A stretch of DNA of 60,313 bases from Macrostomum lignano (lineage: Eukaryota), in contig NIVC01001910.1 in assembly GCA_002269645.1 (NCBI GenBank), forward strand, positions 1 to 60,313, read 5' to 3'. Of the stretch, positions 4,972-57,384 are shown in pieces (the first letter of the stretch is position 1; every line of letters starts with the position of its first letter). The position numbers were made by a program, and so were the translations under genes. The notes beneath the pieces are model-generated. The model had not been told where the DNA came from. It was given only the letters and a program-made list of their open reading frames with translations, and ran no database searches.

Positions 4972-5652
4972 ATGATAAAGCGGTTAATTATTAAAACCAG
5001 CAGCCACAAATGCCTACTTCTAATAGCAGCCGTTATTCTGGCAATTTTCGCCAACACATCTGGCGCAATTTCACGGAGCTGTTCAAGAGGCTCCTACTTC
5101 AACAGCTTGAGCGGCATGTGCGACCCCTGCCCAACAGAATGCTTGACGAGTCCCCAGTCACCAAACGTGACCGATTACATGCGACGGAAGTGCCAGAAGC
5201 TGGCAGACCAGTGTTCACCAAATCTAGCGACTAGCAAGTCCGGTTCAACCTCATCAACGCCAACATCTGACAGTCCAGTGAGTAAGAGTCCAAAAAACTC
5301 TGAAGCCGGAGTCAACAATGAAGACAGGCAAGCACCGCCAGACGATCGCTATGGTCATAAGGCTGCTGGTGGGATTGTTGGAGCTGCTATTCTACTGCTT
5401 ATTTTTGTCCCAGTCGGTAAAAAGCTGCGATCAATAATAATTCGAAATAGAAGACCTGGAGAAAGCAACATACCGATGCAGAACATCAAGGAAAACTCAG
5501 ATGCAGCTTCAGCCACCCTGCTCTCTGGCTCGAATAATACTCAAGAACCGAACGGTTTTCAAATTAATGAGGAAGCAACTGCCGACGACAAAGTTACCAG
5601 CCAGCCTGACAATCCACCTGAAGACCCTCCAGCAGTACCTAATGTTGAGTAA
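4972..5652 (+). CDS. Single-CRD TNFR-like (BCMA/TACI-type) type-I membrane protein, paralog 1, 226 aa
   Basis: Signal peptide; CSRGSYFNSLSGMCDPCPTEC...C...C; Ser/Thr/Pro stalk; TM GGIVGAAILLLIFVPV then basic residues; acidic tail. Confidence 0.75.
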   Translation: MIKRLIIKTSSHKCLLLIAAVILAIFANTSGAISRSCSRGSYFNSLSGMCDPCPTECLTSPQSPNVTDYMRRKCQKLADQCSPNLATSKSGSTSSTPTSDSPVSKSPKNSEAGVNNEDRQAPPDDRYGHKAAGGIVGAAILLLIFVPVGKKLRSIIIRNRRPGESNIPMQNIKENSDAASATLLSGSNNTQEPNGFQINEEATADDKVTSQPDNPPEDPPAVPNVE

Positions 5653-6374
5653 GCATGCACGCATCCAGTCACTTATCATTTAGGCATGGTGAACCAATTG
5701 ACTAATGATGGAGATGTTACTACCATAACGAACGACGCATAATGGGCTTGAGAAAATACACAAGTAGCTAATGTAGCTTATGCGTACTTAAATTTCGTAG
5801 CATAGGACACAACTTGTGCCATAGACGAAACAGGCGTGATGACACCGCGGCATTAAAAATCGGCTTCAACTTTTCGTCTTTATTGGCCCTCTGTGTACAA
5901 GTACTCTGGTAGCGTCCTTCTAAAGGTACTCCGATCCAGTTTTCACTGCATCTAGTAAATGTTGGATTGGCAAAGCTTGAACCTAACGTTTTATACTTAG
6001 TACTGCAATCTGTGAACAAAATGTATTATTTAAATTGTACATGTTTTACTGTGATTACTACTGAATTCAGCTCGTATGCAACAGCATTAATATAAAGTAC
6101 ATTCTAGTTCATAATATTGCAATCAATCTATTTACCCCATTCAATTGTCAATTCGTCAGTAAACGTTGCGTAGTTCTAAAACATTGGCTTGTCATTTGAA
6201 AATATCTGAAAGTAACTGTTGTTTATAGTAAACACTAACACAATTCTAACACTAATTAATTGAATGTATAATATATAGTCAGTTGAGTCAGTTAAGTAAT
6301 GTACTGTGTAGTATATTCCGTAGTGTGTAGCAAACAGAAAAATACTGTTATTGCTGTTAGTCTTCATTTTCCGC

Positions 6375-7169
<795 letters not shown>

Positions 7170-7670
7170 GCCATCAATATTTGGCAGGTAATCATTCGCT
7201 ACGATGTTTGGTAGTCTCTAATAAAATATTACCAGTCTACTAGGTACTACTTCCAAAAATGCAGTCGCTAACACCTAAAAAAGGAAAAACCAAAGGCCCA
7301 ATAGTACGTCTGCCAGCAAAGTTCCCTTTTTCGCTGTACAGAGCTATGCTGTACATTTATCAGCTCTGTCTTCGCAGTTCTGTCCAAGCGTAAATGTACA
7401 CTTACGCCTAAACTATGTAGGCGTTGACTGGCTCTGCACAAGTGAGTGGCAGAGGACTAGCTCGCATCTGGCTTGGGTAAAGTCTAAAAATAGATCTTAT
7501 TTACGCTTCAAGAGAACCCCAATCCCGACAGTTTACAACCTGTACAATCTGGCAAGCTCTAAATGTACGTAGCAAGCTTTCAAAGAGGAATGACTGCACA
7601 CAGAAAATATGGGCTTGACTACTTGTTATTTCTTTTATAATTTTTGACTGTTGACGAATAAAAGTTTAAT

Positions 7671-8288
7671 ATGGCTATCAATCTGCGCGCACAGTCAGGG
7701 ATATTGTGGGCTTTTGTATGCCTGTACATAGTCTCGAGGGCTTCGGCAGTTCCAGCGGTGACGAGATGTCGCGCAGACCAGTACTACAACAGTTTGAGCC
7801 AAATATGCGAATCGTGTCCAGAGGAATGCCTGCTCGGAACAGTTAGAACAGCTTGCACTGGCATGGCTAGCCAATGCCAACCGCTGACAACAACTACTCT
7901 GACCGTTGTGACGACGCATGAAGTGACGACAACAAGTCAGAACTCGTCGGGCGCTGACGTGGAGAACTCGTGGATCATCATTGTCCTAACAACGATTGGC
8001 ATCCTACTGTTCTGTTTGTTAGTCTTTTTATTTTGTAGATTCTTTGCTTTTAAAAGAATGGATAAATATTTGAGACTAAAGCTGCACCGAGCTGGAGAGG
8101 CTACAGTGCCAGCACCGGAGACAGCTGGGCCTGAAGAGTCGGAGCCTTTGGCAAAGGCAGCATCGGCATCATCCTGTCAAGAACGTGCAGAACAACACGA
8201 AGTCAGTGCGCAGGCTAGCGCTGGCCAACACGCTAAAACCATTTCTGCACCAAAAATTCCAGGACTCGATGCAGATGATCGTTATTAA
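7671..8288 (+). CDS. Single-CRD TNFR-like type-I membrane protein, paralog 2, 205 aa
   Basis: Signal peptide; CRADQYYNSLSQICESCPEEC...C...C; Thr-rich stalk; TM WIIIVLTTIGILLFCLLVFLFC; cytoplasmic tail. Confidence 0.78.
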   Translation: MAINLRAQSGILWAFVCLYIVSRASAVPAVTRCRADQYYNSLSQICESCPEECLLGTVRTACTGMASQCQPLTTTTLTVVTTHEVTTTSQNSSGADVENSWIIIVLTTIGILLFCLLVFLFCRFFAFKRMDKYLRLKLHRAGEATVPAPETAGPEESEPLAKAASASSCQERAEQHEVSAQASAGQHAKTISAPKIPGLDADDRY

Positions 8289-8667
8289 AAAATAGCAATT
8301 CTCATGTTGCGAATGGCCATGTTGAAAAAAAAACTTTCCAAACTGACTCTTATCCATTGCCTTGTTATTTCTTATCGTTCGATCACTTTTTCGTTCGATC
8401 AATTTGATCACTTTTTCTTTGAATATTTGTACTTTTCTGTAATACCACAGCTATATTCTACAGAGGCAAAATGCAATGTACTGCATGCAAGCTACGAATC
8501 AAAATAAACATCTTGCACGTCGACAAACAACTGTAAATAGCAGTTACCCCTTCATTCCTCTTAAACGTCATATGCGTGCTGTACAGAAATTAATAAATCT
8601 GTTTTTCCTCAACAAAAGTTGTCTATGGCGAAAACCCCATTCAGCACTTATGCATTCTCTATAGAGC

Positions 8668-8792
8668 ATACTGAATGCACTGGCATTCAGTATACGTATA
8701 AGATATTCTATGGGTTTGAGTTCGGTATGTGATTAAGTCCCGAGAGCCGAAGGAAGTGAAATATCGACCGAAAAACCCATAGAATATCTTAT
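8668..8792. repeat. Two adjacent small hairpins (11-bp arms 8668-8693; 20-bp perfect arms 8698-8717/8773-8792), MITE-like
   Basis: atactgaatgc/gcattcagtat and ataagatattctatgggttt/aaacccatagaatatcttat. Confidence 0.7.
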
Positions 8793-9251
8793 TTAAACGA
8801 CTTTAATTTTGCGGGATGTATTCAGATAAATCCCGGAGCCATACTTGTATGTCTATGGTTGAAGTTGGGGATGGGGGTGTGGAGGCGAAGCCCCTGCTGG
8901 GGGTGTGGGGGCGAAGCCCCCACATTCTTACCATAGACAAAATTTCATTAAGAAATTTCTCGAGTCACGAAGGAAGAGAAGAGAGAAGCTCGCTTATTTA
9001 GATACACACAATAATCCTTGCAACATGTCCGGGAAAGTGATCGATTTAATCCCGCAAAATAAAATCTATGTCAATAACCTCACTGAAAGTGAGCTTTAAA
9101 GTGGTTTAAACGTTCCTTACCGACCTCCAACTCATTTCTAAGAAAATCGAATGCAGCGTTCTGCTTAATTTGACCATGTAAATCGGTTAGTTACCAGGAT
9201 AGCACCACGAGCGACGGCACTTTTGCATGCTCACGAGTAGTTCCATCATGC

Positions 9252-9590
9252 CTACTGACAAAAGTGACATTCTGACATCCTGACTGTACTGACAAAAGTG
9301 ACATTCTGACATCCTGACTACTGACAAAAGTGACATTCTGACATCCTGACTGTACTGACAAAAGTGACATTCTGACATCCTGACTGTACTGACAAAAGTG
9401 ACATTCTGACATCCTGACTGTACTGACAAAAGCGACATTCTGACATCCTGACTGTACTGACAAAAGCGACATTCTGACATCCTGACTCTACTGACAAAAA
9501 TGACATTCTGACATCCTGACTCTACTGAAAATAGTGACATTCTGACATCCTGACTGTACTGACAATTATAGTGCATGACTTCCTGACATA
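9252..9590. repeat. 34-bp minisatellite (ctgacaaaagtgacattctgacatcctgactgta)
   Basis: Directly visible. Confidence 0.97.
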
Positions 9591-9729
9591 CTGACTGTTA
9601 CTGACAATAGTGAAATTCTGACATAATGATTATATTGAAAATTTTTAGTAAGAAACAGGGTTCTGTGTGCACCCTGGCGCACTTTAGGCTACATGTACAT
9701 TGTCACACAACCAACGAGAGGAATTTCTG

Positions 9730-9826
9730 CTCATTCCGCCGACTCCCCTGAGCAGGCACACACTCACAGGAGTGTACAGCGGGCCATAAATTTATTTTCG
9801 AGCGTATTGTTAGGCATGTGCACTTC
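9730..9826 (+). repeat. Short dispersed repeat (gcaggcacacactcacaggagtgtacagcgg...aggcatgtgcact)
   Basis: Related copies at ~1855-1935(-), 14327-14447(+), 27063-27105(-), 27447-27490(-), 42575-42660(+). Confidence 0.75.
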
Positions 9827-10017
9827 ATGTTGACATCCTGATTATACTGGTAGTCTACGAGCGTATGACTAGCAGAACCAAAGCTGACTAGCTAACAAAA
9901 ATGTTAAAGTTTCTTGATTAATTGATTCGATACTTTAAAATATACATCATGTTTATTTGTAAGATTTAATATTCACATGGCTGTCTGAGCCAGGCATCAG
10001 ATGACAGTCTTTTTTAA

Positions 10018-10683
10018 TCAAAGTACACTTGGCGCAGATGCGTTACCAACGATTCGCTCAATAGAAGCCGAAAAACTTGTTGTCTCGGCTAACACATATT
10101 TTCCGTTGTCTTTGTCGCCTGGGGTCTTGGTTGGCACAGCAGCACCGGTCACCAGAGAATGACTCTCGCCTTTTTCCGCGCTTCTGGCTGCTTTTTGTTT
10201 CGTCGACTTCTTATTTTGAAGCACTACAGCCAAGATTGTAGCAAAAGTCCACAAAATTAATAAAACTGTAACCAGTATAATAACTTTATGCCAGGTAGCG
10301 AAGACCGGCTTTGATGAAGAAGTTTTTCCAAAACTGTTCAGCTTTTGAGGATCACTGATTGACCTCTCGGACAATGCGGCGATTCCACGTGCACTGCTGG
10401 TGTAAACAGCTGTTGTTGTCAACCACAAGCAGTAGCCAGCTCTCCACAGCTTCTTGCACCGCAGCGACCAAGAGGGGCTGTGAATTTCATTGCAGTGCGG
10501 GTTGAGGCACTGCGCAGGGCACGACTCGCAGGTTCCAGACAATTCGCTGTAGTAACTGGCTGGAGGACACACCGCGGCCTGAAGCATGTACGATCTGATC
10601 CGCATTGTCATGCATTGTGTCAAACTCACCGATGCCATCAGCAAAACTATGAGCCTTAGGCTAAGTTGACAGCTTACAAACAT
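10018..10683 (-). CDS. Single-CRD TNFR-like type-I membrane protein, paralog 3, 221 aa
   Basis: Signal peptide; CPPASYYSELSGTCESCPAQC...C...C...C; stalk; TM VIILVTVLLILWTFATILAVVL followed by QNKKSTKQK. Confidence 0.75.
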   Translation of the reverse strand: MFVSCQLSLRLIVLLMASVSLTQCMTMRIRSYMLQAAVCPPASYYSELSGTCESCPAQCLNPHCNEIHSPSWSLRCKKLWRAGYCLWLTTTAVYTSSARGIAALSERSISDPQKLNSFGKTSSSKPVFATWHKVIILVTVLLILWTFATILAVVLQNKKSTKQKAARSAEKGESHSLVTGAAVPTKTPGDKDNGKYVLAETTSFSASIERIVGNASAPSVL

Positions 10684-11245
10684 TGTGCTTATTCTATTTT
10701 TTTAAAGTTGATAAAGTTTCGAATATTAACCGGATTTTGGATTCGTCTTGCAAAATCTTTGCTCCGTGTTGCAAAATAAATGATTCTAAAACACTGTACT
10801 AGCGTATGTGCTTTTGATTGTACTTAAAAATAGCATGCCGAAGTTCCACAATGCTCATTGCACAAAAGGAGGGCTTTTATACTCGTATTGTTGCCAAAGC
10901 CATACTGTAGTGCTCAGTACTGTACATATCCAATGCGCACATTGATTTTAATTTATATTACAGATAAAACTTCAGATATACTTTTAGCTAAAAAGCATCC
11001 GTGTTCATATCTTATCTGTACTTTATTGATGAGCCTGTACAAGCTTTTTTCGCCATTTACTGAAATGTGGTTGCTATTTTGATAAACTAAACGCATCGAA
11101 GCGAAAAACATACGAAACAGAAAGGACTGAACAAACAACTCGATTAGAGAATTATTTTTCAATTTATTTTTATTAAACCGAGTTGCGTTAGCACTTGCAT
11201 TAATTTTCATTATGTCAATAATAGTTTTATCCACGACAGCTGAAA

Positions 11246-12655
11246 ATTTCATCGTCCATCACAGCTTCATCATCTCCATCGTCCATCACAGCTCCATCAT
11301 CTTCATGGTCCATCACAGCTCCATCATCTTCATGGTCCATCACAGCTCCATCATCTTCATGGTCCATCACAGCTCCATCATCTCCATCGCCCATCACAGC
11401 CCCATCATCTTCATGGTCCATCACAACTTCATCATCTCCATCGTCCATCACAGCTCCATCATCTTCATGGTCCATCACAGCCCCATCATCTTCATCGTCC
11501 ATCACAGCTCCATCATCTCTAACGTCCTTCACAGCTCCATCATCTTCATCGTCCACCACAGCTCCATCATCTCATCGTTCATCACAGCTCCATCATCTCC
11601 ATCGTCCATCACAGCTCCATCATCTTCATCGTCCATCACAGCTCCATCATCTCATCGTCCATCACAGCTCCATCATCTCATCGTCCATCACAGCTCCATC
11701 ATCTCCATCGCCCATCACAGCCCCATCATTTTCATGGTCCATCACAGCTTCATCATCTCCATCGTCCATCACAGCTCCATCATCTTCATGGTCCATCACA
11801 GCCCCATCATCTTCATCGTCCATCACAGCTCCATCATCTCTAACGTCCTTCACAGCTCCATCATCTTCATCGTCCACCACAGCTCCATCATCTCATCGTT
11901 CATCACAGCTCCATCATCTCCATCGTCCATCACAGCTCCATCATCTTCATCGTCCATCACAGCTCCATCATCTTCATCGTCCACCACAGCTCCATCATCT
12001 CATCGTTCATCACAGCTCCATCATCTCCATCGTCCATCACAGCTCCATCATCTTCATCGTCCATCACAGCTCCATCATCTTCATCGTCCACCACAGCTCC
12101 ATCATCTCATCGTTCATCACAGCTCCATCATCTCCATCGTCCATCACAGCTCCATCATCTTCATCGTCCATCACAGCTCCATCATCTTCATCGTCCACCA
12201 CAGCTCCATCATCTCATCGTTCATCACAGCTCCATCATCTCCATCGTCCATCACAGCTCCATCATCTTCATCGTCCATCACAGCTCCATCATCTCATCGT
12301 CCATCACAGCTCCATCATCTCATCGTCCATCACAGCTCCATCATCTCCATCGTCCATCACAGCTCCATCATCTCCATCGTCCATCAAAGCTCAAGCATCT
12401 CATCGTCCATCACAGCTCCACCATCTCCATCGTCCATCACAGCTCCATCATCTCCATCGTCCATCAAAGCTCAAGTATCTCATCGTCCATCACAGCTCAA
12501 GCATCTCATCGTCCATCACAGCTCAAGCATCTCATCGTCCATCACAGCTCAAGCATCTCATCGTCCATCACAGCTCAAGCATCTCATCGTCCATCACAGC
12601 TCAAGCATCTCATCGTCCATCACAGCTCAAGCATCTTATCGTCCATCACAGCTTA
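11246..12655. repeat. 24-27-bp minisatellite (catcgtccatcacagctccatcatctt)
   Basis: Directly visible; units vary in length. Confidence 0.97.
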
Positions 12656-12834
12656 ATTCTTGCAACTGTCATTTTGCAAGAGGATTGGACGAGAGCTACG
12701 GAGATCAGGCAGCTGCAGTATGGTTCAACTACTATATGTGTGTGCGAAAGAGAATATTTTAGTTTAACTTTGTTTTTTTATAGTATGCAGCACACTATAC
12801 AAGCGCATTGGTATATAATCTTTGGTAGGACATC

Positions 12835-13615
12835 ACCCCCTGACCGAAGACATCACCCTGACCAAATACATCAACCTCTGACTGAAGATATCAACCTCTG
12901 ACTGAAGATATCAACCTCTGACTGAAAATATAAACCCTCTGACTGAAGACATCACCCTGACCAAATACATCAACCTCTGACTGAAGGCATCAACCTCTGA
13001 CTGAAGATATCAACCCTCTGACTGAAGACATCAACTCCTTGACTGTCGACATCAGCCCCTGGCTGATGACACCAGCCCCTGACTGAAGACATCAACCTCT
13101 GACTGAAGACATCAACCTCTGACTGAAGACATCAACCTCTGACTGAAGACATCAACCTCTGACTGAAGACATCAACCTCTGACTGAAGACATCAACCTCT
13201 GACTGAAGACATCACCCTGACTGAAGACATCACCCTGACTGAAGACATCACCCTGACTGAAGACATTACCCACTGACTGAAGACATCAACCTCTGACTGA
13301 AGACATCAACCTCTGACTGAAGACATCAACCTCTGACTGAAGACATCAACCTCTGACTGAAGACATCAACCTCTGACTGAAGACATCAACCTCTGACTGA
13401 AGACATCACCCTGACTGAAGACATCACCCTGACTGAAGACATCACCCTGACTGAAGACATTACCCACTGACTGAAGACATCAACCTCTGACTGAAGACAT
13501 CAACCTCTGACTGAAGACATCAACCTCTGACTGAAGACATCAACCTCTGACTGAAGACATCACCCTGACTGAAGACATCACCCTGACTGAAGACATCAAA
13601 CCCTGACAAAAGACA
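12835..13615. repeat. 18/20-bp minisatellite (ctgactgaagacatcaacct)
   Basis: Directly visible. Confidence 0.97.
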
Positions 13616-14151
13616 TGACCTCCTAAGTAAAGATAGCTACCCCTGACATGATCTGCTTCACCGACCTTTCAGCGACACTGATGTCGAACCACCCGACGTT
13701 CCGGAAGCAAAAATTAATTCTTTAAATATTGCTCTATTGTCACATTGCTAATGCTTTCAGTTCTTTTCTATGCTCACTATGTATTTTTTCGAGTAAAGAT
13801 GTATGTTATGTTTTTATTAGATGTATGTTATTAGTCTTAGATATCAGTTTGACTAGTTTTAAATTAATCAAATATACTTGAAGAGGTTGAAAAAGTAAAA
13901 ACTATTAACATAGCTATCAATAAAGAAAAGAAAATGATACTATCTGTTAACTGTCATTATGATAATGATTTTCTGTCACTGTTTAATTGATGAACTAAGA
14001 TATTAGTTTAGAATGATTACGAGTCAAGTTTATTCGCGTAAAAATCCAGTAGACCTTTGGCCAAGTCTTGAGCTGTCGCGTTTCGTTGAGCTGTCTAAAA
14101 CAAACATTTAACACCAGCGTTATAAAGTAGCTCTGATTATCTGATTAGAGA

Positions 14152-14447
14152 GGTTGCAGCCTAGTGATTAGAGCATCGGACTCGCGACTGAAAGGTCGAG
14201 GGTTCGATTCTCGACCCACTCGGAACAATTTGTGTTCTTGAGCAAGACACACTTAACTCTGCATTGCTTCAGTTCTCCCCGCTGTGAAATGGGTGCCAGC
14301 ATTAGCTTTAAGCGACACCCATTCCGCCCACTCCCGTGAGCAGGCACACAAGCGCGCGGATACGTACGCAGTCATACGCACAGGCACACACTCACACAGG
14401 AGTGTACAGCGGCCCTGACTTTATTTACCAATTAGGCATGTACACTT
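14152..14447 (+). mobile_element. tRNA-derived SINE, followed by the dispersed gcaggcac...gtgtacagc repeat
   Basis: A-box-like tagtgattagag; B-box ggttcgattc (14201-14210); tRNA-unrelated body gtgttcttgagcaagacacac...ctgtgaaatgggtgccagc. Confidence 0.75.
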
Positions 14448-14590
14448 AGGCATGCCCTCAAGGCCGTTAATTGCACGAGCAGAGCCAAGCCGAGATTCCT
14501 GCAATTTCGCCCCAAACTACTGTGACTGCACTTGGAATCGAGCTGGTACAGCAGAGGGCAACAGCAGTAACTTGATATTAAAAATCGCAG

Positions 14591-17500
14591 TCATCGCAGT
14601 GACGAACGCAGACTTACCAGACGCTTCATCGCTTTGGCCTTTTCCTCTCGCAGAGCTGCGCTGTTCAGCACCATCTGCTGGTTTTCTTCAACAATTCGAT
14701 TGACAATATTCGCTGCCGGGCAGTAGAGCAGCGCCATCAGCACCTGCTGGGCATCGGGAGATTCTGACGGCTTCAGCAGCTCAGTGAACCAGCTGACATC
14801 CCCGCCAGCACCGGAGATCAGCTCAAACTGGAGACATTTCAACAAACAGTCAAAGTTCATAAAGAACACTCCAGAACTTCTGTCCAACTCTAAAGGAAAA
14901 TTTGCTTGCAGAGATGGCGGCAGAAATTCTAGTCGAATTTGTTGATGCTGGGAAAACTTGAAGCAAAACTTCCAGGCGCAGTCGCTGGTGACCAGGTATT
15001 GCTCCACGAGGCGGTTGGCTCTAGCTTGGTTCGATGCCAGATCGTCCGACCTCCATTGGGGATATTTAATGCCACTGTGAGATCGGAATTTGTGACTTCT
15101 GATGGCTTGGACTGCCGCGGCTCTGTCACCTTCTCTGAGATGCGTCAGCACTCGAAGCGATGCGGCTGTGGTTCTGGCGCACGCCGGCAAGTCATTAATC
15201 AATTTCAAATGCTGCGCCAAGCTGCAGCTGTTTCCAGGCGTTGCCAGGTTGACCAGCAACTGCCTGACTAAATCGTACAATTGATGGTACTCCTGAACCA
15301 AGTTGGTGCTGTCTGGACTTTGAGCATCGAACTCTTGGCACAGTTGCAGGTCCGGCATGACTAGAAAAGTTTGATAGTAAAACACCTGACAGGCAGGTCT
15401 CAGAGGTTCTGAGCAATATTGCTCCAGTTGATTTGTCAGATCCTGCCGCACCGCCTCGATGGCATCGAAGATCTGCTGCCGATCGGAGTGGTTTGGTTCG
15501 AGTCTGACGTGAACCGTCGGACAGAAAATATCAGGGATCAGCGCGGCAGTGCCATCCGAACTAGCTAGGAGACGGTTCTGCAAAGTGCGCAGTGACTGGC
15601 GAGTCAGCTTGAGCACATTCTCCGGGCGCCATTCTCCACTTGGAGTCGAATGAAGCATTTGAAATAGAAGCAACTTTGCCAGATTGTCCGGTAAACCATC
15701 AACTAAACGAGTCAGTAGTCGACCGATGATGTACTTTAATAGAACAAAAACCTGACCCTGAACAGTGCTCAGACAGCGTAATAGTCTTTGCTTAAGGAAT
15801 TGCGTACAAAACTGAAATAGACTGGATGGTGTAGCATCTCGACAGCGTTCGGCGTAGCACCTTGAACTACTCAACTCTTCCTTTAGCTGACTGATTACGT
15901 CATCAGTGAGTTTGGTCTCTGAATTCTGCAGCAGGCTTACCGGAGGATGACGGCAGCACTCCAGCACAGGTGAGTGGCTGATTGCTGGAATCTTGGCTTG
16001 GACAGATCCGACAGACTTGGATGGCGACAGTTCATCTGCAGTTAGAGGGGAAATGTTAGCGGCTTGATTCCCAGTTTAAATAAGGCCTTCACTGCCCCTG
16101 CTCTTCCCAAAAACTGCTATAGTGCTGCCGCTGCTATCGTTGTCGTGCTAAAGCCCCTTGGTGCTAAAGCCCCTTGGTGCTAAAGCCCCTTGGTGGTAAA
16201 GCCCCTTGGTGCTAAAGCCCCTTGGTGCTAAAGCCCCTTGGTGCTAAAGCCCCTTGGTGCTAAAGCCCCTTGGTGCTAAAGCCCCTTGGTGCTAAAGCCC
16301 CTTGGTGCTAAAGCCCCTTGGTGCTAAAGCCCCTTGGTGCTAAAGCCCCTTGGTGCTAAAGCCCCTTGGTGCTAAAGCCCCTTGGTGCTAAAGCCCCTTG
16401 GTGCTAAAGCCCCTTGGTGCTAAAGCCCCTTGGTGCTAAAGCCCCTTGGTGCTAAAGCCCCTTGGTGCTAAAGCCCCTTGGTGCTAAAGCCCCTTGGTGC
16501 TAAAGCCCCTTGGTGCTAAAGCCCCTTGGTGCTAAAGCCCCTTGGTGCTAAAGCCCCACGATGGCACTCCCAAAGGTAAGCCCCCAAAGCAAAAGTCCTG
16601 GCTACATACCCAAGCAGTCTCCTCTGTAGCTCAAGCGGCCGTCTTCGCGCAGCTCCAGCTGCTCTCCGTTGCTCCTGGAAGCAGAGCTCTGCCGCTGCCG
16701 CACCGACAGACGCCGCGAACGTGCAGCACCCGACCGGGCACCGGCAGAACCAGCTTCACTTCGACATCGTCAGCTTCAAATTCGCCGTTAGCGCAGGCAA
16801 GTTGGGCACCCCAGCAGTCGGCAAAAGTTCCCGAAAAGCGCATTCGAAGTTCCTCGAAGTTGTTTTCATCGTCGCCACGATGGCACAGCCTGGTCAAACG
16901 AGCTCGACAGATGGCCTCGGTGGCGTCAACCGTGGCGGCATGCAGACAGGCAGTCAGCTGGTGAAATCCGGCTGCCAGCAGGTTGCGATGGAGGCTGACG
17001 CTGAGATCGGAGTCTGAGAGCAGCGGCCTGGGTATGGAGAGAAGGTCACACTTATGTCTAACAGTCTAACAGGTGACACAATCCTGTCTAATAGTCCAAC
17101 AGGTGTCACACTCCTGTCTAACAGTCTAACAGGTGTCACACTGCTGTCTAACAGTCTAACAGGTGTCACACTGCTGTCTAATAGTCTAACAGGTGTCACA
17201 CTGCTGTCTAATAGTCTAACAGGTGTCACACTGCTGTCTAACAGTCTAACAGGTGTCACACTGCTGTCTAATAGTCTAACAGGTGTCACACTGCTGTCTA
17301 ACAGTCTAACAGGTGTCACACTGCTGTCTAACAGTCTAACAGGTGTCACACTGCTGTCTAATAGTCTAACAGGTGTCACACTGCTGTCTAATAGTCTAAC
17401 AGGTGTCACACTGCTGTCTAACAGTCTAACAGGTGTCACACTGCTGTCTAATAGTCTAACAGGTGTCACACTGCTGTCTAATAGTCTAACAGGTGTCACA

Positions 17501-20500
17501 CTGCTGTCTAACAGTCTAACAGGTGTCACACTGCTGTCTAACAGTCCAACAGGTGTCACACTGCTGTCTAACAGTCTAACAGGTGTCACACTGCTGTCTA
17601 ACAGTCTAACAGGTGTCACACTGCTGTCTAATAGTCTAACAGGTGTCACACTGCTGTCTAACAGTCTAACAGGTGTCACACTGCTGTCTAATAGTCTAAC
17701 AGGTGTCACACTGCTGTCTAACAGTCTAACAGGTGTCACACTGCTGTCTAATAGTCTAACAGGTGTCACACTGCTGTCTAACAGTCTAACAGGTGTCACA
17801 CTGCTGTCTAATAGTCTAACAGGTGTCACACTGCTGTCTAACAGTCTAACAGGTGTCACACTGCTGTCTAATAGTCTAACAGGTGTCACACTGCTGTCTA
17901 ATAGTCTAACAGGTGTCACACTGCTGTCTAACAGTCCAACAGGTGTCACACTGCTGTCTAACAGTCCAACAGGTGTCACACTGCTGTCTAATAGTCTAAC
18001 AGGTGTCACACTGCTGTCTAACAGTCTAACAGGTGTCACACTCATGTCTAACAGTCTAGCAGATGACTCCAGAACCTTATGCACCAGACGATCACCTTTC
18101 CGGATCCGTAGCAGCTAATGCATCAATTTCGCCTGTTACTTCTCGAAGCTCGCTAGCCAGGGTCACGTGACCTCGCCGCTGTGCCGCCTGCCAAGCGGCG
18201 TCGCCACGAAAATCTCGCGCCGTCGGGTCGGCGCCCCCGGTGCCACCAACAAGCAGGCGGGCGATTCGAACGTCGCCAACTCGAGCTGCCAAATGCAGCA
18301 CCGTCTCGCCGGTGTCTCCGCGTCGAAGATTGGCGTCGGCGCCGGCGTGCAGTAGCTGTCGAACGGCGCCCAGCTGGCGCCGAAGCGCCGCAGTGTGTAG
18401 CGGAGTGGCGCCGCTAGCAGCGGTGCGGCAATCGATGGGGGCGCCAATGACGGAGGCGGCCAGGCACCTGCGGAGTCGATTTGGAAAATCCTTACTCTCG
18501 ATTTTCACCTACTCTACCGAGTCTTACTCTACCGAGTCTACTCTACCGAGTCTACTCTACCGAGTCTACTCTACCGAGTCTACTCTACCGAGTCTACTCT
18601 ACCGAGTCTACTCTACCGAGTCTACTCTACCGAGTCTACTCTACCGAGTCTACTCTACCGAGTCTACTCTACCGAGTCTACTCTACCGAGTCTACTCTAC
18701 CGAGTCTACTCTACCGAGTCTACTCTACCGAGTCTACTCTACCGAGTCTACTCTACCGAGTCTACTCTACCGAGTCTACTCTACCGAGTCTTACTCTACC
18801 GAGTCTACTCTACCGAGTCTACTCTACCGAGTCTACTCTACCGAGTCTACTCTACCGAGTCTACTCTACCGAGTCTACTCTACCGAGTCTTACTCTACCG
18901 AGTCTTACTCACCGAGTCTACTCTACCGAATCTATTAAAAAACTCTACCAAATCAATTCCTCCCACCTGACAACTCTCGAATAGCCCCTCTGAGCAGCCA
19001 CAAACATCGGCGAGAATCCACCGGGCGCCGTCAGACCCGGGTCGGCCAGCCCAACCGACACCAGCAGCTCAACTGAGGCCGTCTGGCCGCCCTGAGCCGC
19101 CAAGTACACCGGAGTGGCGCCCCCGCGCGTCTGTCGATCAACGTCAGCCTGCATAGCAACCAGCAGGGCAAGCACCTCAGGGCGACCTCGCCGTGCGGCC
19201 AGGTGCATCGGCAGGGCAACTTCCGGACTCGCCTGCGCCGCCAGCAGCGCCGACACCGTCCCGACGTGCCCCGCCTCGGCCGCCAGCGACATCGGCGTCG
19301 AGCCGCAATCCGCCATCGCATCGACGTCGGCTCCGGCCACCGCCAGCCGCGTCACCATGGCAACTCGACCGGCCCTGGCGGCCAGGTGCATCGGTGAATA
19401 ACCACCGGCTGCCGTCCTCGAGTCCAGACCAGCCTGAGCGCGGATCAGCTCCGCGAGACAGTTGGCACGGTTCGCGGCCACCGCCAGATGAGCCGCCGAC
19501 GCGCCGTCGTGACGCCGAGCGTCGGGATCGGCGCCGCAGTGGAGCAGCAGCCGAATCTGCTCTGGTTGAGAGCTGGCTACTGAAAGTAGTAGCGCCGTCT
19601 CGCCAGAGCGTCCCGACACAGCGTTCGGATCGGCGCCAGCTCTGAGCAGCTGTCCGACTGTCGAGAGGCAACCCCGGCGTGCAGCTCGACATAGCGCCGT
19701 TGTGTCACCGTCGTCTGCGGCATCATCGAGAGTGTCGACATTCATGTCGGTAAATGCTTCTTCGTCGGCAAGTGCTAATGCAGAATCGACATTGAGCGGC
19801 GCTTGAGCTTGGTACAGCCTCGAGAGGACATTCGGGTCGAGCGGGGAGTGGCTGTAATATTCAGTGGCGATGTTGTTCACATCCGCTTGGGCTCTGATTA
19901 GCTCGTCCATTGCCGCGTAGCGCTGGAATCGGGCCGACAGGCTGAGTGGCAGCAGTGCTGAGCTGCCGCACAGGTTGGGATTTGCCTGGGAGGCAGTTGA
20001 ATTGGTTGGCTAAATTAGTAACCTACTCTAAGTAGGTTAGTTCAGTGAGATGCCACCCAGAAATCTAACCAATTCATTCTACCCAATCTACCCAAACTAA
20101 CTCTACCCAACCTATCTAATCTACCCAACCTAATTCTACCCAACCTACCAATCTACCCAATCTACCCAACCTAACTCTACCTAACCTATCTAATCTACCC
20201 AACCTAATTCTACCCAACCTACCAATCTACCCAATCTACCCAACCTAACTCTACCAAATCTACCCAATGCATTACTGATGCTCCATGGCCACATACAGGC
20301 CCCATTAAACCACTTCAGGAAGCAATCTTTGGCCACCTGTGCATCCAGCAGGAGTCGGACCAGATCTAGACGTCCCGACATCGAGGCAATCGCCAGAGGT
20401 GACATCAGAGCGCCGTACTCGCAGCCGCCTTGGTCCGGATCGGCGCCGGCCTGCAGCAGCAGCAGCCTCGCAGTGCCAACGTGTCCACCGCGGCAGGCAG

Positions 20501-21089: not shown

Positions 21090-21668
21090 TTGGGCCGGAA
21101 GTCCAGGCTGAGTAGTGAGTCACAGCCGATGCATTTCATTAATTGGCTAATTTTCCTTTTATTACCTTTTTGGAGTCGGCTCTGCGCCATTTTCTCTGTT
21201 ATGAATGAACGAGCTTGAGAGGGGGAGAGAGGGTTTGTTAATAAGAAGTTGAGGGTTAGAGAGTGCACTGCTCAGTGTGCTTGAGCTACCTGTGCAAACT
21301 CGAAAATATGTACGATAGTAATTCTTAAAATAACAGAGTCGAGGAGAGGAGAGAGAGGAGAGAGAGTGTGTGTGTATGCATAGCTTTCGAACGTTCGACT
21401 TCATTTGTGAGTTGGAGTTTTTTTTTTCAAACCGAAAAATCTGCCTTAAAATTTTCTCTTTCATGCAATTGTTACAATGGCTATCATTGTGCAAAAATTT
21501 GCGCAGTTCAAAAAAACGGTGGGTACATATAGAGGCTAATTCAAGCCACTGAGGGCATAGGTGTAGCATTATAAACAGCTGATTAATGCAGCTTATCTCT
21601 CTGTATTTCGTACCTTTCTCATTTGTGGTGGGCAGTCTTGATCAAAGCAGTCATTATCGCAATCAAAG

Positions 21669-22105
21669 CCATGACCATAAACTATCGCCATGATCAGAGT
21701 CATAGCCCTGACCATAAACTATCGCCATGATTATAGTCATAGCCCTGACCATAAACTATCGCCATGATTATAGTCATAGCCATGACCATAAACTATCGTC
21801 ATGATCAGAGTCATAGCCATGACCATAAACTATCGCCATGATCAGAATCATAGCCATGACTATAAACTATCACCATGATTATAGTCATAGCCATGACCAT
21901 AAACTATCGACATGATCAGAGTCATAGCCCTGACCATAAACTATCGCCATGATTATAGTCATAGCCATGACCATAAACTATCGCCATGATTATAGTCATA
22001 GACATGACCATAAACTATCGCCATGATTATAGTCATAGCCCTGACCATAAACTATCGACATGATCAGAGTCATAGCCATGACCAGTAAACTATCGCCATG
22101 ATCAT
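21669..22105. repeat. 37-bp minisatellite between the divergent cGLR and TRIM start codons
   Basis: Unit catgaccataaactatcgccatgatcagagtcatagc, period 37. Confidence 0.96.
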
Positions 22106-22567
22106 ACTTCGCAGTCGCAAAACTATGAAACAACTATGACACTTGGCGAGAGTTCGCAGCATAATTTACCGTCATGACAGCAACTCTTTTCTACCGTTAA
22201 CTGTGCTTGTATACAGGTGAAGACTGAAGAGAAGTGTTTTCAAGTACACCAGTCCTGTGCAGCCGACTCATATGAAAACAATAATATATACTTGGCTGCA
22301 ACTATTATAAATAAATGCATTATATGCTTCAGCTAGTGCTATTTTTATCCATTTCGCAATGCTTCATGGCCGGAGTGTACAGTCAGTGTCTGCTGCTCTG
22401 TAACAAGGAACTATTCAATGTACAATTAGGTGTACATCGGTTAACAGTTTTATGACCCCTTATTTAAACGTTTAGAAGCCTCTCTCGTAGGGTTAAAGAA
22501 TACAAGATTTCCTAGAAATCTCACTGAGCAGCATTTTGAATATTGCCAGAGACATTGTCAAAAACAC

Positions 22568-25500
22568 ATGGCAACATCTGCTGCAGAGCCTGGAGCTTCT
22601 AGAAGCGAACAAGAGCTCATTGCCGATTGCACCTGCCCGGTGTGTCAGGAGCTGTTCCAGCATCCCCAGAGGCTGACAGCCTGCAGGCACACATTCTGCA
22701 AGAAGTGCGCCAAAAAGATGGCCGCAAAGACTTCGAATCCGATGGAGGAAGCTGCCGAAATGTCATTTGGCTTGTTCGGGATGTTTCACCACCGGGAGCG
22801 TCAAACTTCGGCGAAGGAGAAGCCGGGCAGCGTCTGCTGTCCCATCTGCAGGGAGACTAGCGAGAAGTTCGAGCCGGATGAGACCATCGAGTACTTGGTT
22901 AAGGTGAGCTAGGTAGGGTGAGTGGACTGATTAGGCTTAGAGTAGGTTTGGGGTAGGTTTAGAAAAGATTTGGAGTAGCTTAAGTAGATTTGAAGCAGGT
23001 TGAGTAAGACTTGGAGTAGATTGAGTACGTTTAAAGTAGATTTAAAGTAAATTGAGTAAATTTTGAGTAGGTTTAGAGTAGATTTGAAGTAGGTTGATTA
23101 GATTTGGAGTAGGTTGATTAGATTTCAGGTAGGTGGAGTAGATTTTGAGTAAAATTGAGTAGATTTGGAGTAGGTTGAGTAGATTTAAGGTAGGTTTAGA
23201 GTAGATTTAGAGTAGGTTGAATAGACTTGGAGTAGGTTGAGTAGATTTGAAGTTGACTGAGTAGATTTCAGGTAGGTTTAGTAGATTTGGAGTGGGTTGA
23301 GTAGATTTGGAGTTGGCTACGTTGAGTAGACTGTCTCCCCCAAAAACTGCCGCAGGTGCTCCAGGAGATGCGACATCAGAGCCGTTGCTCTGGCGCCGAG
23401 TCCTGCCTGACCGAAGCCACGCTGCAGTGCCCCTGCTGCGACAAGCGCTTCTGTCAGTCGCACCATGCAGCCCAGCTTACCGCCCTCAAAGACTCCGGAA
23501 CCGCTCTGCTCAAAGACCTGGACTCTTTGCTCTTTGAACCGGACCAAAATGGCGACGAGAAGCTGAAGCAGCTGCAATCAGCGATGTCGGAGTCTGTAGA
23601 AATTGAGTCGTTGCTAGCCGAACAGCTTCATCGGAAATTTGCCGATTTTCGCGAACAGATCGGGCTGTGCCAATCCCAGCTGCAGTCTCCCCTTGTCCCA
23701 GATGAGGCCGAGCGGTCGGTGCTGCTCCTGGACAGAGCGGTGCTGAGACAGCTCACCTCCAACGGGGCCAGCGCCAGGCTTGCCCGTCTGCTACCGGAAG
23801 CAAAATCCCGAGCAAAACGCGCTCAGGAGCGTTGGCCTGAGAGGCGGTTGGCTTTGCAGTTTGACGCGGTGAAAATGCAATACGATTTCGAAGGCTTGCT
23901 GGCTCAGCACGCCAGCTCGGCGGTTTTCCAGTCGCCTTACGAGGGCCTGCCGCCCATGCTGACACGAGTGCGGCAGCAGAATCTCTCGCAGAAGCCCTGG
24001 GATATCGGCATCCTGTCCAATCTGGAGGGCATTGTCTGCTGCGATGGGGCCATCAAGCTGCGATCCAGTGTTGGCGATTCGGCCGGATCGGCTAAAGAGT
24101 TGACTGGGCCCCTGCTGGTGATCAATGCTCAGTGCTTTCCCACCAAAATGCTGCACGTTACCGACCTGGAGGTGAGATGGTGATTGCTGGACTGGGTCAT
24201 TGTGAGCTGGACTGGGTCATTGTGATCTGGACTGGGTCATTGTGATCTGGACTGGGTCATTGTAATCTGGACTGGGTCATTGTGAGCTGGACTGGGTTAT
24301 TGTGAGCTGGACTGGGTCATTGTGAGTTGGACTGGGTCATTGTGGGCTGGACTGGGTCATTGTGAGATTGACTGGATTATTGTGAGATTGACTGGGTTAT
24401 TGGGAGCTGGACTGGGTCATTGTGAGCTGGACTCGGTCATTGGGAGCTGGACTGGGTCATTGCTAGCTGGACTGGGTGATTGTGAGCTGGACTGGGTCAT
24501 TGTGATCTGGACTGGGTCATTGTGATCTGGACAGGGTCATTGTGATCTGAACTGGGTCATTGTGAGCTGGACTGGGTTATTGTGAGCTGGACTGGGTCAT
24601 TGTGAGTTGGACTGGGTCATTGTGGGCTGGACAGGGTCATTGTGAGCTGGACTGGGTCATTTTGAGCTGGACTGGGTCATTGTGAGCTGGACTGGGTCAT
24701 TGTGAGCTGGACTGGGTCATTTTGAGCTGGACTGGGTCATTGTGAGCTGGACTGGGTCATTGTGAGCTGGACTGGGTCATTGTGAGCTGGACTGGGTCAT
24801 TTTGAGCTGGACTGGGTCATTGTGAGCTGGACTGGGTCATTGTGAGCTGGACTGGGTCATTTTGAGCTGGACTGGGTCATTGTGAGCTGGACTGGGTCAT
24901 TGTGAGCTGGACTGGGTCATTGTGAGCTGGACTGGGTCATTTTGAGCTGCACTTGGTCATTATGAGCTGCACTTGGTCATTATGAGCTGCACTTGGTCAT
25001 TGTAAGCTGGACTGGGTCATTGCGAGCTGGACTGGGTGATTGTGAGCTGCACTTGGTCATTGTGAGCTGGACTTGGTCATTGTGAGCTGGACTGGGTCAT
25101 TGTGAGCTGGACTGGGTCATTGTGAGCTGGACTGGGTCATTGCTAGCTGGACTGGGTGATTGTGAGCTGGACTGGGTCATTGTGAGCTGGACTTGGTCAT
25201 TTTGAGCTGGACTGGGTCATTGTGAGCTGGACTGGGTCATTGTGAGCTGGACTGGGTCATTGTGAGCTGGACTGGGTCATTGTGAGCTGGACTGGGTCAT
25301 TGTGAGCTGGACTGGGTCATTGTGAGCTGGACTTGGTCATTATGAGCTGCACTTGGTCATTATGAGCTGCACTTGGTCATTATGAGCTGCACTTGGTCAT
25401 TGTAAGCTGGACTGGGTCATTGCGAGCTGGACTGGGTGATTGTGAGCTGCACTTGGTCATTGTGAGCTGGACTTGGTCATTGTGAGCTGGACTGGGTCAT

Positions 25501-28016
25501 TGTGAGCTGGACTGGGTCATTGTGAGCTGGACTGGGTCATTTTGAACTGGACTGGGTCATTGTGAGCTGGACTGGGTCATTGTGAGCTGGACTGGGTCAT
25601 TTTGAACTGGACTGGGTCATTGTGAGCTGGACTGGGTCATTGTGAGCTGGACTTGGTCATTATGAGCTGCACTTGGTCATTATGAGCTGCACTTGGTCAT
25701 TGTAAGCTGGACTGGGTCATTGCGAGCTGGACTGGGTGATTGTGAGCTGCACTTGGTCATTGTGAGCTGGACTTGGTCATTGTGAGCTGGACTTGGTCAT
25801 TACAAGCTAAATAAACCATACATTAACAGCCCTGCTATCTGCACAATCCAATTTAAACCCAACCTTCCAGGTGAAGCAGGTGGCTACAATAACTCCCAAG
25901 TTCAATGGCGAGGGCATGCCTGGCAGGATGCACATCTACAACCAGCGCCAGCTAATCCTTACCTCAGACGCTTCCAGGCACCGAGTCACCGTGTTCAACC
26001 TGGAGGGTCGCACTGTGACCAGCTTCGGCGAGAAAGGCTCAGAACCTCGCCAGTTTCACAGTCCTCTCGGCCTCAGCGCATTTGGCGGTCAAATGTTCGT
26101 TGTGGATGCCAAGAATTTGAGGGTGCAGGTGAGTTGTGAATTAGTGCGCCTGCCCGAATCTTGTCTTCTACTCTGGCAGCATTGAAGTTAAGAATAACTA
26201 GAATATCTCTATATCTAAATCTAAATATCTCTATATCTCTATATCTAAATATCTATATCTATATCTAAATCTATATCTAATCTATATCTAATCTATATCT
26301 ATCTATATCTATCTATCTATATCTATATCTATATCTATCTATATCTATATCTATATCTATATCTATATCTATATCTATATCTATCTATATCTATATCTAT
26401 AATCTATAATCTATAATCTAATCTAATCTATATCTATATCTAATCTATATCTAATCTATATCTATATCTAATATCTATATCTAAATATCTCTATAATGTT
26501 CATTTCCAGCCTCTCCTTCTCTCCCCTTCTCTCCCCTTCTCTCCCCTTCTCTTCCTTCTCTTCCTTCTCTCCCCTTCTCTCCCCTTCTCTTCCTTCTCTC
26601 CCCTTCTCTCCCCTTCTCTTCCTTCTCTCCCCTTCTCTCCCCTTCTCTCACCTTCTCTCCTTCTCTCTCCTTCTCTTTCCTTCTCTCCCCTTCTCTCCCC
26701 TTCTCTCCCCTTCTCTCCCCTTCTCTCCCTTCTCTCCCTTTCTCTCACTTTCTCTCCCCTTCTCTCCCTTCTCTCCCCTTCTCTTTCCTTCTCTCACTTT
26801 CTCTCCCCTTCTCTCCCTTCTCTCCCCTTCTCTCCTCTTCTATCCCCTTCTCTCTCCTTCTCTCCTCTTCTCTCCGCTTCTCTCCCCTTCTCTCTCCTTT
26901 CTTTCCCCATCTCTCCTCTTCTCTCCCCTTCCTCTCACCTACTCTCCCCTTCTCTCCCCTTCTCTTTCCTTCTCTCCCCTTCTCTCCCCTTCTCTCCCCT
27001 CCTCTCCCCTTCTCTCCCCTTCTCTCCCCTTCTCTCCCCTCCTCTCCCCTTCTCTCCCCTGAAGTCAGGGTTGCTGTACTTGTACACCCTGTTTGAGCGT
27101 GTATATAGTATTGGCTCAGAACCTCGCCAGTTTCACAGTCCTCTCGGCCTCAGCGCATTTGGCGGTCAAATGTTCGTTGTGGATGCCAAGAATTTGAGGG
27201 TGCAGGTGAGTTGTGAATTAGTGCGCCTGCCCGAATCTTTTCTTCTACTCTGGCAGCATTGAAGTTAAGAATAACTAGAATTTAAATCTAAATATCTCTA
27301 TAATGTTCATTTCCAGCCTCTCTCCCCTTCTCTCTCCTTCTCTCCCCTTCTCTTCCTTCTCTCCCCTTCTCTCCCCTTCTCTCCCCTTCTCTCCCCTTCT
27401 CTTCCTTCTCTCCCCTTCTCTCCCCTCCTCTCCCCTTCTCTCCCCTGAAGTCCGGGTTGCTGTACTTGTACACCCTGTTTGAGCGTGTATATAGTATTGG
27501 CTCAGGAAGTTGTGTGAGCGTTGCAAACCGCAGGTATTCGACATGGACAATGACTACAGCTGCTTGGCATTGATCAAACACGATGGATTTTCCAATGGAC
27601 TGCAGTCAGTCCTTGCCACCGACAGTTCCGTATTCGTAGTTGATCGCGAAAATTCGAAGATGTTCGTCTTCAACAAAGCCAACAGGCAGTCGGTGGCGCC
27701 GCCATTGAAACTCGAATGCCAACCGTTCGATGTGGTGGCAGATGACCATGGCAACGCATTGGTGACGCTCGTCCGAGAGGCCAAAGTGCTGGCAGTGAAC
27801 AGGTGCGGAACAAAGCTGAAGACATTCGAATTCAAGGAGACAGCCGAAGGCAGGCAGCAGATGCCGGACGACTTTCCGATGATGATGATGATGCCGATGC
27901 TCATGGCGAATGGCTGCCCGCCCAGGATGTTCCACGGGTTGGCGTTTGAGTCGGGCAGCAGACGGCTGTACATTGCGGACTTGATGCGGAGCTGCGTTGT
28001 GGTGGCGCAGCTCTGA
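22568..28016 (+). CDS. TRIM-NHL protein (RING, B-box-like, coiled coil, NHL propeller), ~630 aa. Exons 22568-22903, 23356-24171, 25871-26128, 27534-28016.
   Basis: CPVC..CRHTFCKKC..CPIC RING; C/H cluster CPCCDKRFCQSHH; NHL repeats (FGEKGSEPRQFHSPLGL, MFVVDAKNLRVQVFD, LYIAD). All three introns are GT-AG phase 0. Confidence 0.9.
22920..23325. repeat. Degenerate gagtagattt/gagtaggtt repeat in TRIM intron 1
   Basis: Directly visible. Confidence 0.85.
24186..25800. repeat. 20-bp minisatellite (tgtgagctggactgggtcat) filling TRIM intron 2
   Basis: Directly visible. Confidence 0.98.
26200..27060. repeat. (CTATAT)-type and (ttctctcccc)-type simple repeats in TRIM intron 3
   Basis: Directly visible. 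Confidence 0.95.
27113..27505 (+). repeat. Tandem duplicate of 26036-27119 (3' half of TRIM exon 3, its donor and intron) with contracted simple repeats
   Basis: ggctcagaacctcgccag...gtgcaggtgagttg recurs. GGCTCAG is present at all three junctions (26036, 27113, 27499). Confidence 0.92.
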
Positions 28017-28223
28017 CGGCACTGACTGGCTGCGGTCACACATCTGTGCACTGCTTACGCCAAATTTTTGCTGAAATTTTCATTTTGCAAGTTGTACAAC
28101 CGGATCAGTTTATTTAATGTATCCACCGCTTATTAGCTGTGTGCTCTCGTGTAGCTTGCATTGCAGGCTGGCTGTCTGGCTCAGGAACCACCGGGGCGCG
28201 AAACCAGCTAGTCGGCTCTGCTG

Positions 28224-28265
28224 ACAGACAGACAGACAGACACAGACAGACAGACAGACAGACAC

Positions 28266-28356
<91 letters not shown>

Positions 28357-28412
28357 CACAGACAGACAGACAGATAGACAGACAGACACTCTGACAGACA
28401 GACAGACAGTCT

Positions 28413-28468
<56 letters not shown>

Positions 28469-28477
28469 CACAGACAC

Positions 28478-28528
<51 letters not shown>

Positions 28529-33153: not shown

Positions 33154-42504
<9,351 letters not shown>

Positions 42505-57372: not shown

Positions 57373-57384
57373 TTCAATATTTTA

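Follow-up and report, generated by a model that had tools for sequence, protein, structure and literature searches.

Five neighbouring genes with immune-type domains in Macrostomum lignano: a probably neutral assembly of TNFR-like, ANK-Mab21 and RING-NHL genes

Do neighbouring genes whose products all resemble components of innate immunity form a functional unit, or do they just happen to lie next to one another? This question is raised by positions 4972-28016 of contig NIVC01001910.1 (assembly GCA_002269645.1) of the flatworm Macrostomum lignano, the whole 60,313 nt stretch analysed here being called the window. A previous sequence-only reading had placed in this span three TNFR-like receptors, a cGAS-like sensor with ankyrin repeats and a TRIM E3 ligase with an NHL domain, and had proposed that they might constitute a novel sensor-ligase-receptor module, with chance adjacency of lineage-expanded families as its own alternative. 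The five neighbouring genes were borne out by our gene models, which fill the span exactly, and the alternative was favoured: with a probability of about 0.6, we infer that this is an ordinary stretch of the M. lignano genome where three unrelated kinds of genes occur side by side, their adjacency being neutral and any functional coupling between them hypothetical. Neutral adjacency was preferred because the Mab21 family is large, because the active site of its member at this locus is degenerate and because the closest NHL relatives are non-immune in character. The first kind of gene would form a local tandem array coding for three small type-I membrane proteins, each with one TNFR-like cysteine-rich domain (CRD) of the BCMA/Fn14 type. 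The second would be a divergent ANK-Mab21 member which, having lost the Ser of its G-S motif and the third metal-binding Asp, most likely acts as a non-catalytic scaffold or regulator. The third would code for a RING-NHL E3 ubiquitin ligase. The gene models and the features belonging to them are as follows (aa, amino acids).

4972-5652 (+): TNFR-like gene 1, single exon, 226 aa, six-Cys domain CSRGSYFNSLSGMCDPCPTECL...C...C
7671-8288 (+): TNFR-like gene 2, single exon, 205 aa
10018-10683 (-): TNFR-like gene 3, single exon, 221 aa, on the strand opposite to genes 1 and 2
21089-20337, 19922-18967 and 18467-18096 (-): ANK-Mab21 exons 1-3, about 690 aa of ankyrin repeats (Pfam Ank, E 1e-15 to 1e-38)
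17027-16610 (-): ANK-Mab21 exon 4, nucleotidyltransferase-core region with G-T (G-S in the family) and D-V-E (D-I-D in the family)
16666-16667 (-): 1-nt deletion (GGG to GG) that shifts the ANK-Mab21 frame; both duplicate copies of the locus have the extra G
16035-14591 (-): ANK-Mab21 exon 5, position of the third catalytic Asp, Mab-21_C-like helical domain and C-terminal region of about 270 aa
21090-22567 (no strand): head-to-head intergenic region, 1.48 kb between the ANK-Mab21 start at 21089 (-) and the RING-NHL start at 22568 (+)
22568-28016 (+): RING-NHL gene, exons 22568-22903, 23356-24171, 25871-26128 and 27534-28016, all phase 0, 630 aa

The window DNA is eukaryotic, contains introns and displays an extreme abundance of minisatellites. 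When the putative Mab21-like region was used to search for homologs, two M. lignano proteins were retrieved, P0001 ('BOX15_Mlig030837g1', 97% identical) and P0002 ('Mab-21 domain-containing protein', 29% identical). The source locus of P0001, hereafter L001 (contig NIVC01001096.1 of the same assembly), was about 99% identical to window positions 4779-28525, and a second one, L002 (contig NIVC01000732.1), was collinear with the window over positions 2000-20161, approximately, at 86-96% identity. Judged by these alignments, L001 and L002 represent the same locus as the window, in the form of allelic or homeologous copies. Around TNFR-like gene 3 (window 9831-11284), identity to L001 dropped to only 91-95%, against mostly 99-100% elsewhere, which suggests a mosaic due to gene conversion, haplotype mixing or chimeric assembly.

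Three small membrane proteins with a six-Cys domain

All three TNFR-like proteins displayed the same organization, composed of a signal-peptide-like hydrophobic N-terminus, one six-Cys domain, a Ser/Thr-rich stalk, one transmembrane segment and a short tail. Inspection of the sequences indicated a type-I membrane topology in each case, the stalk being followed by one hydrophobic stretch some 20 residues long. The strict motif C-x4-Y-[YF]-x2-L-S-x2-C-x2-C-P-x2-C-L was encountered exactly three times in the six-frame translation of the window, always within these open reading frames (ORFs). Gene 2 displayed the Cys spacing closest to that of a canonical TNFR CRD (C-x4-Y-x7-C-x2-C-x3-C-x8-C-x6-C), and a loosened version of a TNFR CRD Cys-spacing pattern matched all three ORFs, compared with 0.04 matches per shuffled window. 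The three genes are considered real because their ORFs are intact in L002 with every Cys conserved, and because ratios of non-synonymous to synonymous substitution rates (dN/dS) were low for gene 2 (0.40 versus L002) and gene 3 (0.35-0.43 versus L002 and L001). The ORF of gene 1 was identical in L001 and intact in L002, where its CRD was conserved. Its dN/dS versus L002 reached 2.16 (41.8 non-synonymous and 6.2 synonymous differences), the changes being clustered in the signal peptide and the cytoplasmic tail and leaving the CRD nearly invariant.

Three pointers, each weak but independent of the others, led to the same assignment. Firstly, the UniRef name of P0004, the homeolog of gene 2, is 'TNFR-Cys domain-containing'. 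Secondly, when a profile of the three proteins was compared with the PDB (177,635 sequences), BCMA came out on top with a non-significant E of 2.2, the alignment covering the C..Y[YF]..L...C..C hairpin. Thirdly, the AlphaFold2 (AF2) model of the gene 2 ectodomain (pLDDT 64) displayed a hairpin and two short helices, an arrangement that we take to resemble the BCMA fold, and a Foldseek search with this model among 350,542 chains yielded BCMA or Fn14 as its top 13 matches out of 13, all non-significant (E 1.1-3.5, probability at most 0.47). Since these pointers agree, we assign the small membrane proteins, with moderate confidence, to a TNFR-like minimal type comparable to BCMA/Fn14, their membership of the superfamily being putative. 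The three receptors announced by the sequence-only reading were thus retained as regards the shared six-Cys motif, the database name and the best matches, none of which, however, reached significance or was accompanied by a Pfam TNFR domain.

The trio might instead be unrelated to TNFR and represent a lineage-specific Cys-rich surface family whose CRD-like spacing of six Cys arose by convergence. This is a possible but rather doubtful explanation. It would account for the lack of any TNFR_c6, BCMA or TACI match in Pfam, even at E<=10, for the low scores in the PDB and Foldseek searches and the modest quality of the ectodomain model, and for the fact that only two database relatives were found, both of them copies of the same genes. 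It fits less well with the convergence of a UniRef/PROSITE-type 'TNFR-Cys' name, the best PDB match and the 13 Foldseek matches on one tiny subfamily.

The TNFR-like assignment is best appreciated by comparison with BCMA (TNFRSF17), TACI, BAFF-R and Fn14 (TNFRSF12A), receptors with a single or partial CRD. Like these, the M. lignano proteins are predicted to be small type-I membrane proteins with one CRD. Their C-x4-Y-[YF]-x-x-L-x-x-x-C-x2-C segment aligned, non-significantly, with the 'CSQNEYFDSLLHACIPC' hairpin of BCMA, and as in BCMA and Fn14 the predicted hairpin is followed by short helices. They differ by an Asn or Ser in place of the Asp of the ligand-binding DxL motif, and by six Cys with a longer second half. 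Moreover, neither a recognised TRAF-binding domain nor a death domain was found (Pfam in the case of the death domain), short TRAF motifs not being judgeable from sequence. Cytoplasmic tails were about 60-80 aa long, with little conservation among paralogs. With such tails and no death domain, the three proteins would most likely serve as binding proteins at the cell surface. If confirmed, flatworm BCMA/Fn14-like proteins with a single CRD would extend the minimal TNFR architecture outside vertebrates.

The ANK-Mab21 gene

The ANK-Mab21 gene is composed of five exons on the minus strand coding for about 1314 aa, with ankyrin repeats followed by a Mab21-superfamily region. Its splice sites are canonical (GT-AG) with consistent phases, and annotated protein P0001 supports the junctions of exons 2/3 and 3/4. 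Searched alone, the region past the ankyrin repeats gave no Pfam or PDB sequence match, and a search for further homologs with a 12-sequence family profile returned only P0001. An exhaustive HMMER search uncovered a much larger family, with 196, 90 and 68 representatives at E<=1e-3, 1e-10 and 1e-30, respectively. Ankyrin repeats together with Mab-21_C were carried by 30 of the 34 strong relatives (Pfam), and the weak outer matches were bona fide Mab-21 proteins, Mab-21_C being present in 47 and the Mab-21 nucleotidyltransferase domain in 35 of 49. Direct comparison of the family with these 49 proteins by hhalign gave a probability of 100% (E 2.4e-40) over 304 columns including the nucleotidyltransferase core, and predicted membership of the Mab-21/cGLR superfamily is secure on this ground. 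Among 20 family clusters sampled, 19 bore an organism name and all 19 belonged to M. lignano, so that the family is regarded as a large lineage-specific expansion. The sequence-only reading had foreseen families expanded in this way.

Animal cGLRs fused to ankyrin repeats were described by Li et al. 2023 (PMC9980059), who included five M. lignano proteins of the present family in a biochemical screen. The Note column of their screen table is empty for these five entries, which thus received neither name nor activity there, and their species table does not include M. lignano. A literature search with the gene identifiers, and with Macrostomum combined with Mab-21, cGAS or STING, brought nothing relevant beyond this paper. 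The window protein shares with ANK-fused cGLRs the N-terminal ankyrin repeats, the subsequent Mab21/cGAS-type nucleotidyltransferase core and the helical Mab-21_C domain, and it belongs to the same family as the screened M. lignano sequences, characterized by the signature AGF...GSFAEGWGNSL...SDIDV...RPAxD. It differs from ANK-fused cGLRs at the active site (see below) and, like the rest of its family, by an additional C-terminal region, conserved and about 270 aa long.

Criteria used by Li et al. to recognize cGLRs were the cGAS/Mab21 fold, a G[S/G] motif in the activation loop, and the pattern [E/D]h[E/D]X50-90[E/D]. For the window protein, the fold was retrieved at the profile level only. 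In the alignments with 34 family members and with P0002, GS, SDIDV and RPAxD of the family were almost invariant and corresponded in the window protein to GT, D-DVEV and IPAISH. G-S was present in P0002 and in 33 of the 34 members (the remaining one being N-terminally truncated), whereas the window protein reads S-G-T-F-A-D-C-W-G. The [E/D]h[E/D] pair was conserved, D-V-E being aligned with the D-I-D of the family and preceded immediately by a one-residue deletion. As to the third acidic residue, RPAxD of the family aligned with IPAIS, a Ser thus standing at the position of the catalytic Asp; acidic residues do occur elsewhere in the 50-90 interval, none of them at the homologous position. The degenerate residues, including this Ser, were the same in L001 and L002. 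Being common to all three copies, these changes predate the duplication. Between the window and L002, dN/dS over the Mab21 exons ranged from 0.09 to 0.44, the highest value being that of exon 5. We conclude that the window ANK-Mab21 gene is probably a maintained paralog under purifying selection whose product would be non-catalytic. The cGAS-like sensor previously proposed for this gene is unlikely in the enzymatic sense because of the degenerate active site; the ankyrin repeats and the placement in the Mab-21/cGLR superfamily were upheld.

In this respect the window protein recalls MAB21L1 and MAB21L2, members of the cGAS fold with no known nucleotide product: it belongs to the Mab21 fold and would not be expected to synthesize a second messenger. 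Mab21L1-type proteins have developmental roles. No close sequence relationship links the window protein to MAB21L1/MAB21L2, Pfam Mab-21 models did not match it, and it is distinguished from them by its ankyrin repeats, its long C-terminal extension and a lineage-specific expansion in which other members keep the catalytic triad. Purifying selection on a cGLR-family member devoid of catalytic residues suggests that expanded cGLR repertoires include non-enzymatic roles.

The reading frame of the window gene, as written, stops at aa 825, the frame being shifted by the 1-nt deletion at 16666-16667. L001 carries a deletion of its own, also of 1 nt, in a GGGG run of exon 5 (L001 12621-14060, corresponding to window 14803); neither site is disrupted in L002. 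This raises the possibility of a decaying pseudogene, in which the frameshift at 16666-16667 would be real and the loss of catalytic residues part of the decay. Such an explanation would make sense of the deletion relative to the two other copies, of the early end of the raw frame, of the degenerate motif and of the additional frameshift in L001 exon 5. It is nevertheless unlikely: indels located in short G-runs, at different places in copies that are 99% identical, are a pattern typical of long-read assembly error; L002 runs intact through both sites; dN/dS is low over the Mab21 exons; and the motif changes are older than the duplication, the ORF having nonetheless been kept open. Because near-identical copies carry different homopolymer indels, the window frameshift is probably an assembly error, which we consider likelier than pseudogenisation. 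A short intron was also considered as the reason why the frame changes in exon 4. The donor and acceptor sites offered no pair in phase, the sole candidate measured 29 nt and comparison with L001 and L002 pointed to the 1-nt deletion.

Some further observations concern the family. The L001 deletion truncates annotated P0001 ('...GAGGMSAGSLSC'), and the C-terminus of this database entry is thus probably incorrect. The region of about 270 aa located after Mab-21_C (window 14591-15400, -) is common to the M. lignano family, where it displays the motifs AWKFCF, LEFLP, FP..L and NFD. Sequence searches against Pfam and the PDB gave no match for it, and it may represent a domain not yet described. 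Additional domains were noted in connection with M. lignano proteins P0062 and P0169. According to the annotation, at least one branch of the Mab21 family carries a fused caspase p20 domain (Pfam Peptidase_C14, E 2.7e-25), and such a cGLR-caspase fusion would deserve attention. Another family member displayed EGF/DSL domains, perhaps through a merged gene model.

The RING-NHL gene and the five-gene neighbourhood

In the product of the last gene, a RING interrupted by a long insert is followed by a Cys/His finger, then by a helical region and NHL repeats, and a 580-aa product annotated over this span in L001 is consistent with the 630-aa model. The RING was recognized by Pfam zf-RING_UBOX (34-40 bits) as well as by zf-C3HC4 and zf-C3HC4_2 above their cut-offs, and the NHL repeats by Pfam NHL (27.5 bits for a cut-off of 20). 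Among solved NHL domains, phmmer matched the NHL region to Thin (4.1e-23), TRIM71 (9.5e-20), TRIM2 (1.1e-15) and Brat (2.4e-10); matches to TRIM2/3 structures ranged from 1e-15 to 3e-12, with two or three matched stretches per structure. A B-box was not detected, neither as a Pfam zf-B_box match at E<=10 nor as a PDB B-box match for residues 105-220, approximately. A Cys/His cluster after the RING, C-x5-C-x7-C-x-C-C-x4-C-x2-H-H, could be a degenerate B-box; its best PDB match was a MetAP1-type zinc finger and was non-significant. Residues from about 150 to 300 looked helical and charged by eye. Within intron 3, positions 27113-27302 (+) are a partial duplicate of 26036-26235, i.e. of the 3' end of exon 3 and the start of the intron (94% over 200 bp, blastn).

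The gene is thus predicted to code for a TRIM-NHL-type E3 ubiquitin ligase with RING and NHL domains, which should strictly be called RING-NHL rather than TRIM since no B-box was detectable. To this extent the earlier label of a TRIM E3 ligase with an NHL domain was amended, its RING and NHL parts being upheld by Pfam and by the PDB matches. The N-terminal RING, central helical region and C-terminal NHL are shared with TRIM-NHL proteins (class VII: TRIM2, TRIM3, TRIM32/Thin, TRIM71/LIN-41 and Brat), from which the window protein differs by the missing B-box, by an insert of about 40 residues between the RING halves and by the absence of a filamin domain. Thin/TRIM32, TRIM71, TRIM2/3 and Brat are mainly developmental and post-transcriptional regulators, not classical immune TRIMs. 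In vertebrates, TRIM32 reportedly ubiquitinates STING.

Could the five genes nevertheless form a functional innate-immune module, composed of a sensor, an E3 ligase and surface receptors and co-regulated, for instance, through a head-to-head promoter? In such a module, the targets of the RING-NHL ligase would be the ANK-Mab21 protein or proteins acting with it, and a place upstream or downstream would fall to the TNFR-like proteins. The idea draws on the fact that the domains of all five products have immune members, and on the conservation of gene order in L001 and L002. It also draws on the recognition of ANK-cGLR fusions in animal immunity, five M. lignano proteins of the family having been chosen as cGLRs (Li et al., PMC9980059), and on the caspase p20 fusion in one family member. 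Yet, among the copies examined, the gene order recurred only in L001 and L002 and, both being recent duplicates of the same locus, this recurrence does not provide independent evidence. The G-S serine and the third catalytic Asp are missing from the Mab21 protein, none of the nearest solved relatives of the NHL domain is an immune TRIM of the SPRY type, and the TNFR assignment is non-significant and unaccompanied by a death domain. Moreover, the Mab21 family is so expanded that chance neighbours are expected. Genes beyond the five are unrelated to them (an RGS gene, a FLYWCH-MULE relic and a retroelement gag). The innate-immunity labels given beforehand to the five families were therefore broadly right, short of an enzymatic sensor, of immune NHL relatives and of a significant TNFR match. 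The five products are better seen as additional members of known families; a novel sensor-ligase-receptor module is unsupported, and we hold a functional module to be quite unlikely.

Neutral adjacency, which we prefer, has to face several points that weigh against it. It is a default, not a result, and is known from one locus and its duplicates. The start codons of the ANK-Mab21 and RING-NHL genes lie 1.48 kb apart in a head-to-head orientation that would allow co-regulation, and the intervening 21090-22567 could be a shared promoter; head-to-head gene arrangements are common in genomes. All the evidence for TNFR is below significance. The AF2 model of the Mab21 region (made with P0001 and a 2-sequence alignment) was unusable, with a pLDDT of 33, and the fold was thus deduced from profiles only. 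Finally, the catalytic triad is retained by other members of the Mab21 family, one of which carries a fused caspase domain, and the family as a whole may well be related to immunity or cell death.

That a dead ANK-cGLR paralog and the RING-NHL gene, driven by a shared bidirectional promoter beside a BCMA-like trio, make up a co-regulated immune locus, with the pseudo-cGLR binding ligand as an adaptor or decoy under the control of ubiquitination, is likewise improbable.

If the adjacency is neutral, what results is a clean annotation for five M. lignano genes that had been poorly annotated, together with a word of caution, as immune-looking neighbours are to be expected where one family has expanded to dozens of diverged lineages. 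M. lignano is amenable to RNA interference and transgenesis, and both the putative non-catalytic cGLR paralog and the single-CRD proteins are testable in this species.

Surrounding DNA

Introns and intergenic DNA were filled with very dense minisatellite arrays with periods of about 12-60 bp, which gave rise to spurious long ORFs on both strands. Their positions are listed below together with that of the WSC-domain exon, which is located outside the five-gene span.

6176-7243, 11212-13100, 16145-16560, 16954-18084, 18500-18940, 24186-25808 and 26250-27100: minisatellite arrays, first part of the window
28110-28650, 29290-30340, 38854-39903, 40171-41035, 46233-46987 and 47337-47800: minisatellite arrays, middle of the window
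48566-49322, 49830-51384, 56833-57387 and 57672-60032: minisatellite arrays, end of the window
49341-49649 (-): WSC-domain exon (Pfam WSC, E 3.2e-11, 43.7 bits)

Directly upstream of the five genes, an unannotated ORF of 409 aa (2587-3816, +) was intact in L002, with 97.5% identity and a dN/dS of 0.14. It had no Pfam or PDB match in sequence searches and is probably a real gene of unknown family. Downstream of the five genes, two exons at 37748-38017 and 42301-42501 (+) each code for one half of an RGS domain (Pfam E 3.6e-16 and 6.1e-11), and the RGS gene extends at least over 37.7-42.5 kb. Further on, a FLYWCH zinc finger (E 1.1e-10) is followed, in consecutive frames, by a MULE transposase fragment (E 2e-4) at 44417-45800 (+). 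This element is a decayed DNA transposon or a domesticated transposase relic. A gag-like retroelement ORF (DUF1759, E 4e-4) was observed at 54148-55212 (-), near a frame displaying a CCHC-like 'CRNCLRRHHTRDC' motif, and the adjoining ORFs at 51905-53312 (+) had no family match.

The WSC domain that had been announced downstream of the five genes was confirmed by Pfam. It lies 21 kb away from them, past the RGS gene and the transposon relics. The WSC exon and its flanking 'SVSQCL' minisatellite are present twice, about 10.7 kb apart, the second copy being partial (60108-60299, -), which indicates that the WSC gene underwent a local segmental duplication.

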